From contig CP075493.1 of NCBI GenBank assembly GCA_021613535.1, forward strand, positions 6,138,001-6,202,000: a stretch of 64,000 nt of DNA, given 5' to 3'. This DNA comes from Adineta vaga (lineage: Eukaryota; Animalia; Rotifera). Shown piece by piece: positions 9,864 to 13,440 of the stretch. The notes beneath the pieces were generated by a model, which was not told the DNA's origin, searched no databases, and saw only the letters and a list, made by a program, of their open reading frames with translations. The position numbers were made by a program, and so were the translations under genes. Each line of letters begins with the position of its first letter. The first letter of the stretch is position 1.

Positions 9864-10455
9864 ATGGCTAGTAATTTATCTTCGTATGGTTTAAAATCAT
9901 CTGATGAATTAATAGGTTTGTCATCTAAATTTGAAATAGAAATGATATCTTTCGAGAGATTATAGTTTTCTAATTGTATCCAAACTCGATCCTAGTAATA
10001 ATGTTAATCCTATCGGCTTGAAACTAGAACATTAGTTTTACTTTTGATATCTTCTTGTAATACGATAAACTAATAGTACCAATGTTAGATAGAAAAAGAG
10101 TACATAGAGCAAATAAGTAATAAATAATATCTTATCTGCTATTTCTGTTTCTTTGTACAAGCCTTGACGAACAAAAGCTGTATGTGTTATTGTGGTGTAC
10201 CCTCGCTTGAAACAATTTTTCTTCTATAGTATAGTATATTATCTTTTCTTCTATTAGGTTTCGAAGCAGCATCATTCTTACTTGGTGTTGGCATTGGCAG
10301 CATAGTACTCGTTGTCATTTTTGGCTTTATCTTATGTCGTATGGATATGACAGGTGATCATTGTAAGTTTTCATATAATATTATTTATTTTTGATCAATA
10401 TCTTATGAATTATATTCTAGCACATCGTTCAATTGGTATCTATGTTGAAAATTAA
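9864..10455 (+). CDS. 63-aa single-pass membrane microprotein (3 exons, not in ORF track)
   Basis: Exons 9864-9915, 10258-10362 and 10421-10455 splice in phase with GT-AG to MASNLSSYGLKSSDELIGFEAASFLLGVGIGSIVLVVIFGFILCRMDMTGDHSHRSIGIYVEN*. Confidence 0.6.
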
Positions 10456-10894
10456 ATTTCAATCTTTTTACGTAGTTTCAGTTAGTTTTCAAGTAGTTTT
10501 CTGATGTTCATTTTATTTTATTTTTCTTCTTGTCTTTGTTGCTTCTATGAATGTTATTATATAAAAAAAATATAGAAGAATGAAAACAAACAAATACAAT
10601 AAAAACATCAGTTTACCATAGGCCATTGAATTATTCTTAGATATGCATCGAGACAAAGAAAATAAGGAGTATTTTACAGAATTCATTACAATATTTTAAA
10701 AAAAAGTAGTCTACAAAACGAATGTTTGTAGAAAACTTTTTATCACACACAAAAAAATAAACATAATTATCTTCGTGCATATCTAATTACAGCTTAGACT
10801 TAATTTTCAATAAATACAATTTAGAGATTCGAAAAATGGAAAGAAAGAATAGAATAAGATCTTACACCGGAACATAACTAAAGTTCACTAAATA

Positions 10895-11146
10895 TTATCT
10901 ATACTTTCTTATATTGTGATGAACTGCATATTTCAATTTCTTATTTCGTTTTTTTGATGTTAATCGTAATTTAAATGGATCATTTTTGATAGTAATTATT
11001 GTGATTATTGGCCATTGTATAAAAATGTTTGAATGATTCGTTGTTTTCAATTTCATATCTTTCTTATATCGTTTAAATGCAACACTCTGTCGTGCGTGCA
11101 TGTCAAGAGAGGCTTTTTGACACACGCAGACGGTGTTGCACAATCT
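10895..11146 (-). other. In-frame 83-codon open tail downstream of the AMD1 stop (candidate readthrough extension)
   Basis: ORF-track ORF 10895..11143 is in the same frame as the AMD1 TGA (11149-11147), separated only by an AGA codon. Confidence 0.5.
11078..11140 (-). promoter_or_regulatory. GC-rich RNA stem-loop starting 6 nt after the AMD1 UGA stop
   Basis: Sense strand: UGCAACAC/GUGUUGCA, GUC/GAC, UGCGUG/CACGCA and UGUCAA/UUGACA give 23 Watson-Crick pairs around a 10-nt loop. Confidence 0.75.
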
Positions 11147-12734
11147 TCAGCTAGGAAGCTTTTTATAATAACTATAAATTAAATCATGATCAATCAAACA
11201 AACAATTTGATGATCGATACGTTCAAAATCCGAATAGAAAAATGATTTACGATGTAGATCAAGACTTGGTTCAGCCTAATAAATAAAAATGAAATCTAAA
11301 GAATTTGATAGAAGAAAAAATCTTTACTGTTTCACCAAAAATTGTTGTTGTAAATTTGCCCGGATTGAACATCTTGATAACTTTATGAATTAATTCATTG
11401 TATTGATTGTACGGAACATTAGTTTCAAAACTAACGTATGAAAAATCCGGTTCCGGTGTTATATGAATGGTGAAATAATGACCATCAGGTAATAGACCAT
11501 TCATTGAATAACCACATGGATCAAATAAATAATCGAAAATCTTTGCATTTGGAAAGATTTTATCAATACCAGCTTTCTATAAGAGTAATAAGATTTATCC
11601 CAATAGGGTTGAATAATTAAAAAAAAGTCATCTGTATAGTTTGCCCTAGAATATCGATCGTTTCTTCTAGTTTCATTTTTTTTCTCTACTCAATACATTC
11701 GTAATGATCTCATTAGGGATCCTTTACAATCTTCAAAAACTTACTTTTGTTGCTTCAGCTGTTGAACTAGTATTTTCTTGATAGAATATTTCCATAATTT
11801 TCGGATCTAAATCGGTCATAATTACTTCCAATGTTTGATCCGATTTTGAGCCAACGCGTGCTTTGTCAAGTATGTATAAATACCTAGACAGAAAGATAGA
11901 TAGATTGATTTACATGATGAACATAATGCTTCTTTTCTTGTATTGAAAAATAAACGGCAATAAATGTCGTTACAAAAAGAGTACAAGAATTATCATGCTC
12001 TCTCAACTATCTTTTCGTATTTATTCAGCTGTTTTGACTCACCAGCAATCGACGTTCGTGCGACCAAGAACATAAGCACTACCACCTATACAATAGAACA
12101 AGAAAAAACACTTCTAAGGTCGATTGTACTGGCATTATCTCTACCTTCAAAACAAGAATCGAGATAAGCAACCTAGAAATGATAAGTGAAAAAGTACAAG
12201 CAAATTCCAAAGTCCATTACTTCATGTTCGAAACTTGTATGTGGTGCTTTTTGTAATTCGGGTCGAAGAAATTTTCGACGACTGTAATAAAGTTGCTAGA
12301 ATATAAAGAAAATCAAATGTTAAAAAGATATTTTGTTTTTCTATTTTTTCTTACATCGACCGTATCCAATTCACAATAATCTCGAGCAAGTCTTAATAAT
12401 GGTTGGACGGCATGAAGTAATGTTGTTTCTCCACATGTTTTCAAGACCAAATGTGTAGAAAAAACAAACATACTCGATTCACTCAATACATACGTATCGG
12501 TTGTCGCTGATTGAGCATATCGAAGTACTTTACAATTGACTAAATCCAATACTTCTTCAATCAGATCTCTGAAAAATGAAATTATAGCAGTTAAAGTGGA
12601 ATAATTCGAATGTTCTACCGAGGAATATTCCGTAAATCATTTTGTGGTGTTGTCGGTTTGCCTTTATCATTGGTACTTGACGTAAACCAGATTTCCAATA
12701 ATTTCTCAGCACCTTCGAAGAAATGACCGGTCAT
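11147..12734 (-). CDS. AMD1: S-adenosylmethionine decarboxylase proenzyme
   Basis: MTGHFFEGAEKLLEIWF, pyruvoyl self-cleavage site YVLSESS, LKTCGETT, FDPCGYSMNG, TIHITPEPDFSYVSFETN. Ends YYKKLPS-TGA. Confidence 0.96.
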
Positions 12735-12906
12735 TCGAACTCGTATAATTCACGAATAAAGACGACAAAATAGAGTATACTCTTTTTTCTATAAATATAT
12801 ATGATTGTATTGTTGCGTTTATATATATATATGTGTGTAGAGATAGATATCTACAATGTCAACATTACATTTTTTTTCTCTCTTTTCTCCTTTTTCTTTG
12901 CGCTCG

Positions 12907-12918
12907 CTAAGTCGCCAT
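12907..12918 (-). promoter_or_regulatory. Tiny uORF (ATG GCG ACT TAG, Met-Ala-Thr) in the probable AMD1 5' leader
   Basis: About 170 nt upstream of the main ATG, ahead of a probable 5'UTR intron (~12869-12789). AdoMetDC mRNAs are known to carry regulatory uORFs. Confidence 0.5.
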
Positions 12919-13440
12919 CGAAACTACTATACAAGTTACAAAATTACCCTTGTAAATAGACGGTAGAAATACAGAGGAAATCCCTATTCTCTACTCTGTT
13001 CTCTTGCTTGGCTTCTCTTTTTCTAACTCAAAAGTATAACAAATAATCAAGAGAAACAATCTATTTTTTGATCTTCTTGACAAACGAAACGAATAGGAAA
13101 AATGTAATTTATTTATATTCAGATTTGTTTTCATGATTTTTATTTGTACAATTGAGTATTTACGATGATTCATCAATCATGTTTTCGTGATCTCAATGAT
13201 ACCTTTACAATATTCGTTTTTTTTATTTCAAACGCAATTGTCAAAAACAACATACCAAACATAGTATGTGTTTAATATAAGTGCTTTTGATTTGACCTGA
13301 CAATTTATTAACATGAAAAGAAAGTGAAAAAAATATTTATTTATTTGCACAAAGCGAGTTGAAGCATAGACGATAGTTACAATAAAAAAATTAGAATATA
13401 TCGGACAAAAAAGATTCTCTTGATTGAGCGATATAGAAAA

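Follow-up and report, generated by a model that had tools for sequence, protein, structure and literature searches.

Does the stop codon of the AdoMetDC (AMD1) gene of the bdelloid rotifer Adineta vaga end translation for every ribosome that arrives at it? In the window (the whole stretch of DNA that was analysed, 64,000 nucleotides) this gene lies on the minus strand, and its UGA is followed by a short spacer, a stable hairpin and a frame that stays open to a second stop (Table 1). The best explanation, which is probable while leaving considerable room for doubt, is programmed, hairpin-stimulated readthrough of the stop codon in the AdoMetDC mRNA, giving access to a C-terminal peptide that would exert its effect at the second stop, as a counterpart of the vertebrate AMD1 C-tail.

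Table 1. Features of the AdoMetDC locus, in window coordinates
Feature	Position	Strand	Remarks
AdoMetDC (AMD1) coding region	11150..12734	(-)	8 exons, 330 codons, ATG 12734-12732
Seven introns, CT..AC (GT..AG on the minus strand)	11275-11326, 11577-11744, 11882-12040, 12084-12142, 12171-12218, 12296-12354, 12569-12618	(-)	skipped by RNA contigs
First stop UGA, candidate readthrough site	11147..11149	(-)	a stop in every clade-A sequence (21/21)
Spacer AGAUUG, 6 nt (relatives: GGAUUAY)	11141..11146	(-)	G, U and U positions invariant, A at least 90% (21 sequences)
Hairpin, 63 nt	11078..11140	(-)	5' arm 11117-11140, loop 11107-11116, 3' arm 11078-11106
Tail ORF, 83 codons	10898..11146	(-)	open in 21/21 clade-A sequences; unspliced in mRNA
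Conserved C-terminal 27 codons (...LRLTSKKRNKKLKYAVHHNIRKYR)	10898..10978	(-)	pN/pS 0.26, 3-periodic substitutions
Second stop UAA (10897-10895) and conserved UAUUU after it	10890..10897	(-)	UAA 19/21, UAG 2/21
Remaining unconserved 3'UTR	10728..10889	(-)	RNA contig X1 record 1; without conservation against the second copy

The gene that bears the tail is AdoMetDC/AMD1, whose reading frame the tail continues beyond the stop. Exon 2 encodes the autoprocessing motif YVLSESSMFV (ES/S), the AdoMetDC proteins matched in a protein search with exon 2 alone as query bear PF01536, and the C-terminus of the predicted protein is alignable with other AMD1 proteins. RNA contigs that lack all seven introns continue unspliced from the stop through the hairpin and the tail, reaching at least 10728 (X1 record 1, for example, spans 11274 to 10728). 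A poly(A) site upstream of the 3' arm of the hairpin, which the original prediction had regarded as fatal to readthrough, is not found, the RNA contigs being uninterrupted from the last exon to that point. The transcript of a second genomic copy extends 150-255 nt beyond its tail stop, and a transcript from a relative (L008) carries its poly(A) tail about 600 nt 3' of the first stop. Alternative splicing that removes the stop is ruled out by the collinearity of the RNA contigs in this region. An element belonging to the convergent plus-strand neighbour is rejected because the transcripts of that gene stop near 10847, leaving 230 nt between them and the hairpin. A search for bdelloid AMD1 proteins extended through the first stop yields only BTB-AMD1 fusion models and one mis-spliced model. 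(In the latter, A. ricciae P0270, splicing lands in the tail frame by chance.)

Comparison was made principally within clade A, which comprises 21 distinct bdelloid sequences: the window copy, the second genomic copy and 19 further sequences from Adineta ricciae, A. steineri and Rotaria socialis, from transcripts L008, L011 and L013, and from 12 distinct metagenome sequences. The second copy lies on another chromosome (C4) and is 78% identical overall; it retains the UGA and the second stop, has identical stems and a diverged loop, and its tail of 82 codons differs by an in-frame 3-nt indel. The original prediction was staked on the presence of hairpin and open frame in orthologues, and both are found in the second copy and in every main-clade bdelloid orthologue (21 distinct sequences). 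The arrangement of stop, hairpin and tail is not due to chance.

The sense strand reads ...CCU AGC UGA followed by the spacer AGAUUG, exactly as first described. All 21 clade-A sequences have a stop at this position, UGA in 17 and UAA in four (L027, L031, L038 and L050); both clade B and clade X have UAG there, the carriers being D. carnosus, L012 and the clade-X sequences, and there is no sense codon among about 26 sequences. Free variation of the stop had been put forward as a sign against readthrough. Its identity does vary, with UGA, UAA and UAG all represented, but it never becomes a sense codon; this is the pattern expected from selection for termination together with readthrough, and it is therefore not counted against the idea. 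The base 3' of the first stop is A or G, not C. A following C makes the leakiest context, and UAA is normally the tightest stop; the non-C context, and UAA in four relatives, speak against readthrough.

The distance from stop to hairpin is 6-8 nt across all rotifer lineages. The stem of the window copy had been predicted to contain 23 Watson-Crick pairs: the arms give 8+3+6+6 = 23, and ViennaRNA adds C24-G69. It is also GC-rich as claimed (53%, versus 22% in the rest of the tail and 30% in the window). Its minimum free energy is -33.5 kcal/mol, compared with a shuffle mean of -21.4 (z -3.5; equally stable folds in 2/200 shuffles), and z-scores among the bdelloids range from -3.4 to -6.4. Compensatory changes, a check that the original prediction had specified, are present in the stem: seven pairs are changed on both sides, a result matched by 0/500 shuffles, with 93.7% of cells paired and with one G-C pair replaced by A-U in 10/21 sequences. 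RNAalifold agrees, recovering the same hairpin structure. Substitutions within the hairpin occur at a low rate and without codon periodicity, and synonymous sites are suppressed over it (pS 0.21). Constraint on the hairpin clearly operates at the level of the RNA, not of the encoded peptide. Its stems are nearly invariant, and its loops are variable and A-rich. A search of Rfam over 10000-13200 (E up to 1) finds no family; no pseudoknot is detected, nor is conserved pairing of the loop with downstream sequence seen.

The tail has three parts. Its first ~24 codons constitute the hairpin, the next ~32 are free in sequence, open and of near-constant length, and the last ~27 are conserved. The claim of an 83-codon open frame holds, and the accompanying chance estimate of 1 in 1000 was of the right order (when only the 59 codons outside the hairpin are shuffled, the frame remains open in 0.3% of trials). 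In frame, the 21 sequences contain no stop at all, as against 136 and 119 in the +1 and +2 frames. All nine indels within the tail are multiples of 3 in a nucleotide-only alignment, versus 18, 25 and 16 by length modulo 3 just past the second stop. Thus frame preservation, also proposed beforehand as a check, is seen throughout the tail, together with a coding signature at its end. In the nearly neutral middle, pN/pS is 0.66, a point that weighs against the readthrough reading. In the last 27 codons it is 0.26 in frame 0, versus 1.35 and 1.20 off-frame; pS is at a neutral level (0.56, equal to that of the CDS), and Fitch changes per site are 2.22, 1.59 and 3.48 at codon positions 1, 2 and 3 (p 3.5e-5). 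These 27 residues are very basic (11 Lys/Arg) and end in K-x-R-stop: the final codon is Arg in 21/21 clade-A sequences and Lys stands at -3 in 20/21. The alignment of the two genomic copies decays about 6 nt past the second stop. Comparison of the tail peptide with the PDB produces a chance proteasome match only (E = 1), and comparison of the tails with Pfam produces nothing.

Outside clade A, hairpins of different sequence occur at the same place, 6-8 nt from the stop, in Didymodactylos, in L012 and in clade X, a sister clade that probably corresponds to the monogonont rotifers. On sequence comparison, clade X shares its layout with the bdelloids, and its hairpin and peptide are different. 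It has UAG, spacer and hairpin, and its in-frame tails, 84 or 94 codons long, end ...NLNSKRKPR-stop; 3/3 sequences keep the tail in the frame of the stop. Its last 22 codons show 11 synonymous versus 4 non-synonymous codon differences, including the codon swaps AGA to CGG (Arg) and TCA to AGT (Ser). A protein search with the clade-X tail returns no candidates, which implies that such tails are not called as genes. Against readthrough stands the divergent Didymodactylos-type lineage, where frame continuity is broken in the two sequences sampled: the conserved terminal peptide of D. carnosus is shifted out of frame by a 1-nt deletion, and L012 has its entire conserved tail open in the +2 (-1/+2) frame, with frame 0 ending after 38 codons. 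Improbably long in-frame tails elsewhere, of 117 codons in the nemertean Tubulanus (p 0.0002) and 71 codons in the annelid Owenia (p 0.002), are first hints of wider spread.

Judged from these alignments, the locus has the three features of structure-stimulated readthrough, namely a stop that is kept, a downstream ORF that appears to be coding and a covarying stem 6-8 nt from the stop. The tail contains no conserved AUG (that of L047 lacks any AUG) and without exception shares the reading frame of the stop, so that it is apparently reached from the stop and not from an AUG. Some bdelloid ribosomes, then, very probably pass the AdoMetDC stop, a judgement based on the anatomy of the site, its presence in mRNA, conservation, covariation and coding signature. 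Conservation, compensatory changes, frame preservation and coding signature likewise favor the original prediction of hairpin-driven recoding on AdoMetDC.

How might such a site work? The majority of ribosomes would end at the UGA, releasing the 330-aa proenzyme. Since the hairpin starts 6 nt downstream, it should be positioned at the mRNA entry channel when the stop is in the A site, and it may there tilt the competition from release factor toward near-cognate tRNA, so that a fraction of ribosomes stays in frame. These readthrough ribosomes would add the 83 codons of the tail: the hairpin, the free middle and the basic K-x-R end before UAA. At the second stop the C-terminal peptide would most likely affect, in cis, the ribosome that has just made it, slowing or arresting termination, and/or it would serve as a disposal mark for the extended protein. 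Its action would couple readthrough to AdoMetDC output, as has been proposed for the vertebrate AMD1 C-tail. Polyamine sensing by the rotifer element is pure conjecture.

The first half of this scheme has precedents. A stem located 7-8 nt past the stop codon increases readthrough by a factor of 3 to 14 (Firth et al. 2011, PMC3159437), and conserved stems of this kind are found in Drosophila kelch (UGA-A context) and headcase (PMC3159437). The stem-loops of alphaviruses, tobraviruses and furoviruses and those of kelch and headcase share several features with the rotifer site: the stop is followed by a spacer that is conserved at about 7-8 nt and then by a long stem with compensatory substitutions and enhanced synonymous-site conservation; the UGA-A context is common to kelch and the rotifer. 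Those systems use a long-range stem, whereas the rotifer stem is a compact local hairpin of 24 bp with a 10-nt loop. Its host, moreover, is the mRNA of a cellular polyamine enzyme, and what is encoded downstream has the look of a regulatory peptide, not of a protein domain. The MuLV gag-pol site (UAG, 8-nt spacer, pseudoknot) resembles the rotifer site in having a stop followed by G, a purine-rich spacer and a stable structure at the ribosome entry channel (PMC3159437), but differs in that the rotifer loop is variable and a pseudoknot is not detected.

For the second half, the comparison is with the vertebrate AMD1 C-tail and rests on PMC13025110 and PMC8831848. The C-tail is reached via readthrough, and ribosomes arrest at its stop (Maldosevic et al. 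2026, PMC13025110); its published conservation is claimed for vertebrates only (PMC13025110). The vertebrate and rotifer mRNAs encode the same enzyme, and each has a conserved stop and an in-frame conserved 3'UTR tail of about 100 codons (83 in the rotifer versus 127 in vertebrate AMD1). In both, conservation is focused at the C-terminus of the tail beside the second stop (the last ~20-30 codons in bdelloids and clade X) and the terminal peptide is rich in basic and aromatic residues. The strong covarying hairpin 6-8 nt past the stop sets the rotifer apart from vertebrate AMD1. The terminal motifs also differ: the rotifer K-x-R-stop places Arg at -1, and the human tail has K117, R121 and F124 (the FRK clamp) with an Arg hook at -3 (PMC13025110). 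There is no detectable sequence similarity between the rotifer tail and the human C-tail, and the residue spacing of the human arrest peptide does not fit. With no such similarity, and with Arg at -1 instead of -3, arrest in the rotifer is an analogy and not a demonstrated homology. Neither an upstream AUG nor a MAGDIS-type uORF is found in six rotifer 5'UTRs.

Readthrough could be real and the tail nevertheless a plain functional C-terminal extension, making a second AdoMetDC isoform with a role in localization, binding or stability and without arrest. Functional readthrough isoforms of other enzymes are known, and such an extension is suggested by purifying selection on a segment with 11 Lys/Arg in its last 27 residues and by its basic SKKRNKKLK stretch, which resembles a nuclear localization signal. 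It deserves serious attention while being unlikely: constraint reaches the last residue (always Arg), the UAA (19/21) and the next 5 nt, and the middle stretch of ~32 codons holds its length while its sequence drifts, so that a ribosome-proximal peptide plus spacer fits better than a folded or targeting domain. Extension and arrest are compatible with each other.

An improbable proposal is that the tail is a separate 3'UTR ORF, translated by reinitiation or internal initiation, and the hairpin an unrelated element of stability, localization or protein binding. An in-frame AUG does occur inside the 3' arm (...DMHAR...) in most clade-A tails, but it is missing in Rotaria socialis as well as in the AUG-less L047 tail. 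Frame 0 is, moreover, open all the way from the first stop to that AUG, through variable A-rich loops that bear off-frame stops; stop and tail share one frame in both clades (21/21 in A, 3/3 in X), and the hairpin holds its 6-8 nt distance from the stop despite wholly different sequences.

Less probable still is an untranslated conserved 3'UTR element, for example a platform for binding a regulator, with the open frame as a by-product. The RNA constraint on the hairpin is clear, yet this account leaves unexplained the distribution of stops (0 versus 136 and 119), the multiple-of-3 indels confined to the tail, the 3-periodicity, the pN/pS of 0.26 with neutral synonymous sites, and the clade-X replacements of Ser TCA by AGT and Arg AGA by CGG. 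Access to the tail by other recoding is hardly credible: the placement of a hairpin directly 3' of UGA recalls the SELENON redefinition element, but selenocysteine has a strict need for UGA and is excluded by UAA (L027, L031, L038 and L050) or UAG (D. carnosus, L012 and clade X) in relatives, and hairpin-stimulated -1 frameshifting, suggested by the -1/+2 frame of the L012 tail, is rejected for the window since no slippery X XXY YYZ heptamer precedes the hairpin and the tail is in frame 0 in 21/21 clade-A sequences, with L012 the sole exception.

Hairpin-stimulated readthrough into a peptide acting at the second stop, if true of rotifers, bears on a wider question. AMD1 readthrough-and-stall is among the few cellular cases in which a peptide encoded in the 3'UTR is believed to regulate the mRNA it comes from. 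Its description has so far been confined to vertebrates, and what it is for is still under debate. Finding it again in rotifers, on the same enzyme but with unrelated sequences, would argue for selection on polyamine homeostasis and against a vertebrate accident. The rotifer element is a compact natural module of about 320 nt whose structure, spacer length and arrest peptide are separable by experiment, and K-x-R-stop is a new candidate for a eukaryotic termination-arrest motif. It is possible, and is suggested here only tentatively as a view with the balance against it, that the readthrough tail of AMD1 did not originate with vertebrates, being either ancient among bilaterians or repeatedly evolved, and that a fixed-length spacer with a terminal arrest peptide lets an mRNA count or limit its own translation; in rotifers this device would be driven by a hairpin, would use K-x-R-stop as its arrest motif and would replace the vertebrate uORF sensor.

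The S-adenosylmethionine decarboxylase (AdoMetDC, AMD1) proenzyme gene of the window comprises eight exons and encodes 330 amino acids; the YVLSESSMFV autoprocessing site sits in exon 2, which, as the sole query, matches AdoMetDC proteins with PF01536. Re-reading and folding of the sequence bear out every detail of the original prediction for its 3' end: a stop codon, a short spacer, a hairpin, and an 83-codon in-frame extension (the tail). The hairpin is, as claimed, GC-rich for its surroundings (53% GC, vs 22% in the tail); its energy is -33.5 kcal/mol, compared with -21.4 for shuffles (z -3.5), and no Rfam family matches at it. A convergent plus-strand gene follows, whose RNA contigs end at 10754-10847; they run into the distal part of the AMD1 3'UTR (10728-10847), not into the tail. 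At the corresponding position, A. ricciae and R. socialis have an annotated gene of 71 aa, and BTB_2-AMD1 synteny is kept in Adineta and Rotaria.

Features of the AMD1 3' end and its neighbour (window positions)
Feature	Position	Strand	Remark
AMD1 coding sequence	ATG at 12734, to UGA 11149-11147	minus	
Spacer AGAUUG	11146-11141	minus	directly 3' of UGA
Hairpin	5' arm 11140-11117; 3' arm 11106-11078	minus	3' of spacer; 10-nt loop
Tail open frame, 83 codons	closes at UAA 10897-10895	minus	in frame with first stop
Convergent gene	10300-10847	plus	
Intron of convergent gene	10363-10420	plus	GT..AG

AMD1 3' ends were gathered from A. ricciae, A. steineri, Rotaria socialis, Didymodactylos carnosus and transcript contigs, and metagenome contigs were retrieved by a degenerate pattern for the coding end ...D-x-x-Y-S-Y-Y-K-K. 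The resulting clade A set holds 21 distinct bdelloid sequences, and the hairpin and open frame, which the original prediction expected to find in orthologues, are present in all of them. Among these is a second, diverged genomic copy on contig 4 (the C4 copy), 78% identical over the module stretch, which retains the UGA and identical stem arms, with a diverged loop and one compensatory change from A-U to G-C. The C4 tail is 82 codons long (an in-frame 3-nt indel relative to the window's copy) and has the same second stop, and the alignment of the two copies collapses ~6 nt past that stop. In the nucleotide tree the two copies fall in separate sub-clades, each grouped with a different Adineta species; thus, both duplicates have kept the module since before the species split.

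Comparative evidence indicates that the hairpin truly exists as an RNA structure and is fixed in position. In the alignment of the 21 sequences 93.7% of cells are paired, and pairing is lost when the partner column is slid. Compensatory stem changes, a suggested check, are found: 7 of 24 pairs have changed on both sides (22 cells, reached by none of 500 shuffles), and the same helix is recovered independently by RNAalifold. The top pair has gone from G-C to A-U in 10 of 21 sequences. Another has passed from G-C to G-U to A-U, which turns Cys into Tyr and Ala into Val together in the encoded peptide, so what is kept is the pairing and not the peptide. In deeper lineages the same position holds hairpins of other sequence, behind a 6-8 nt spacer starting GGA (z -6.4 in D. 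carnosus, -3.4 in its relative L012, a metatranscriptome contig, and -2.5 and -1.8 in clade X, described below). The geometry matches that of published readthrough stimulators: stems 7-8 nt 3' of a stop raise readthrough 3- to 14-fold, and conserved cellular readthrough stems are those of Drosophila kelch (in UGA-A context) and headcase (PMC3159437).

Sequence comparison also indicates that the tail behaves like coding sequence read from the first stop. The frame is preserved, as the original prediction proposed to check: across the 21 tails there are no stop codons in frame 0, 136 in +1 and 119 in +2, and all nine distinct tail indels (nucleotide-only MAFFT alignment) are multiples of 3, compared with 18 of 59 in the 160 nt past the second stop (25 and 16 leave remainders of 1 and 2). 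Tail length is 75-89 codons (82 or 83 in 14 of 21), L047 being exceptional with 52. Free variation of the first stop had been named as evidence against readthrough; its identity does vary (UGA in 17, UAA in 4), but it is always a stop and never a sense codon. The tail contains no conserved AUG, and that of L047 lacks AUG altogether, which argues against independent initiation. No database protein extends through the first stop, the exceptions being gene models that are fused or mis-spliced. (P0270, of 403 aa, is a mis-spliced Adineta ricciae model entering frame 0 of the tail at ...KKQQMKINSQIISLRWPPLIQIFLKRDLVRLRSASKKRTKKLK...; P0269 and P0271, of 570 and 552 aa, fuse the upstream BTB_2 gene with AMD1.)

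Substitution pattern by region, clade A
Region	Fitch changes per site, codon positions 1/2/3	pN/pS, frame 0
Last 42 CDS codons	1.19/1.02/3.67	0.17
Hairpin codons	1.42/1.92/1.62	0.64 (pS only 0.21)
Tail middle	3.4/3.35/4.1	0.66
Last 27 tail codons	2.22/1.59/3.48	0.26

This pattern implies that the hairpin is constrained as RNA, and that the middle of the tail is a spacer whose frame stays open and whose length hardly varies. The C-terminal ~27 residues are, on the same kind of evidence, a peptide under purifying selection: codon periodicity is significant (p 3.5e-5), off-frame pN/pS is 1.35 and 1.20, and pS (0.56) compares with 0.58 in the CDS. The last residue is Arg (AGA or AGG) in 21 of 21 sequences, with Lys at -3 in 20; the second stop is UAA in 19 of 21, followed by conserved UAUUU.

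Transcript evidence comes from contigs of four public runs, which are RNA because the contigs skip all seven introns at GT..AG. Contigs of the window's copy are collinear from the last exon across stop, hairpin and tail, reaching 10818 or 10728, and the C4 transcript extends 150-255 nt past its tail stop; neither a poly(A) site nor a splice therefore removes the tail, and the poly(A) site upstream of the 3' stem arm that would have spoken against the module is not seen in these contigs. A related transcript (L008) has its poly(A) tail ~600 nt downstream of the first stop. Word depth is higher for C4-copy contigs (L002) than for window-copy contigs (10890-11576) in all four RNA runs (447 and 75, for example), a contig depth that cannot rank expression.

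In the protein tree, bdelloids have as their sister group a diverse clade of AdoMetDC proteins (clade X), ~53-60% identical and probably of monogonont rotifers. In two of its lineages (L063:1116-1403 and L066:1099-1353) the stop is UAG, the spacer is GGAAUCG and the hairpin spans 10-11 bp; the tails stay open in frame for 94 codons (shuffling p 0.0002) and 84 codons (p 0.003). Both tails end ...KRLRF..NLNSKRKPR-stop, and their middles differ; the last 22 codons have 11 synonymous and 4 non-synonymous codon differences, among them a Ser that switches from TCA to AGT and the terminal Arg, from AGA to CGG. The K-x-R-stop end is common to clade X and bdelloids. Single sequences from the nemertean Tubulanus polymorphus (L070:6361-6715; a UGA stop, 6 nt further on a weak hairpin of 7 bp, and a frame open for 117 codons, p 0.0002) and the annelid Owenia fusiformis (L069:11520-11736; 71 open codons without a hairpin, p 0.002) are leads hinting that AMD1 tails may be widespread in Spiralia.

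Not everything fits. Two sequences were sampled from the divergent bdelloid lineage of Didymodactylos type, and both break continuity. In D. carnosus (L005:6544-6800) frame 0 is open for 72 codons in both assemblies, and the terminal peptide, which can still be recognised (...NKYIFNHNYGKCR-stop), lies in the +2 frame owing to a 1-nt deletion near AACAAAATAAATAC. In L012 (1085-1330) the +2 frame is open from the first stop through the whole conserved tail of 71 codons (ending ...KYFYHHNCRKYR-stop); frame 0 meets a stop after 38 codons, and an upstream A9 run lies in between. Possible explanations are sequencing errors in homopolymers, recent decay or another route of recoding. As originally cautioned, the stop is followed by a base other than the leakiest.

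The best-supported reading is readthrough delivering a C-terminal peptide. Most ribosomes would terminate at UGA; near-cognate decoding would be raised by the hairpin at the mRNA entry channel; readthrough ribosomes would translate the 83-codon tail; and, by analogy with vertebrate AMD1, its basic conserved C-terminal peptide, in the exit tunnel as UAA enters the A site, would slow or block termination and/or act as a degron. In the vertebrate C-tail, eRF1 is trapped by an FRK clamp and Arg hook, and the tail has degron-like properties (PMC13025110); the authors of the queueing model for that system have since qualified it (PMC8831848). A live rival is that the tail is a functional basic (NLS-like) extension. 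A ribosome-proximal role appears to fit better than a targeting domain, since the spacer retains length and not sequence, constraint extends to the final residue, and conservation takes in the second stop together with its 3' context.

Thus read, the rotifer module may work like the vertebrate system, to whose layout it adds a stimulatory structure like those of Firth 2011; by sequence homology it is not a member, since the tail resembles neither the human C-tail nor any PDB or Pfam entry. The literature searched describes the AMD1 C-tail as conserved across vertebrates and does not report one in invertebrates. AUG is absent from six independent rotifer AMD1 5'UTRs (L008, L011, L012, L013, L063 and L066; 79-125 nt, whose 5' ends may be incomplete) and from window 12735-12800; the nearest upstream ATGs in the window, at -131, -136 and -184, all lie past the RNA contig ends. 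A MAGDIS-type uORF therefore seems absent, to the extent that these 5' ends are complete, and the main control of rotifer AMD1 translation in cis would then be the 3' module.
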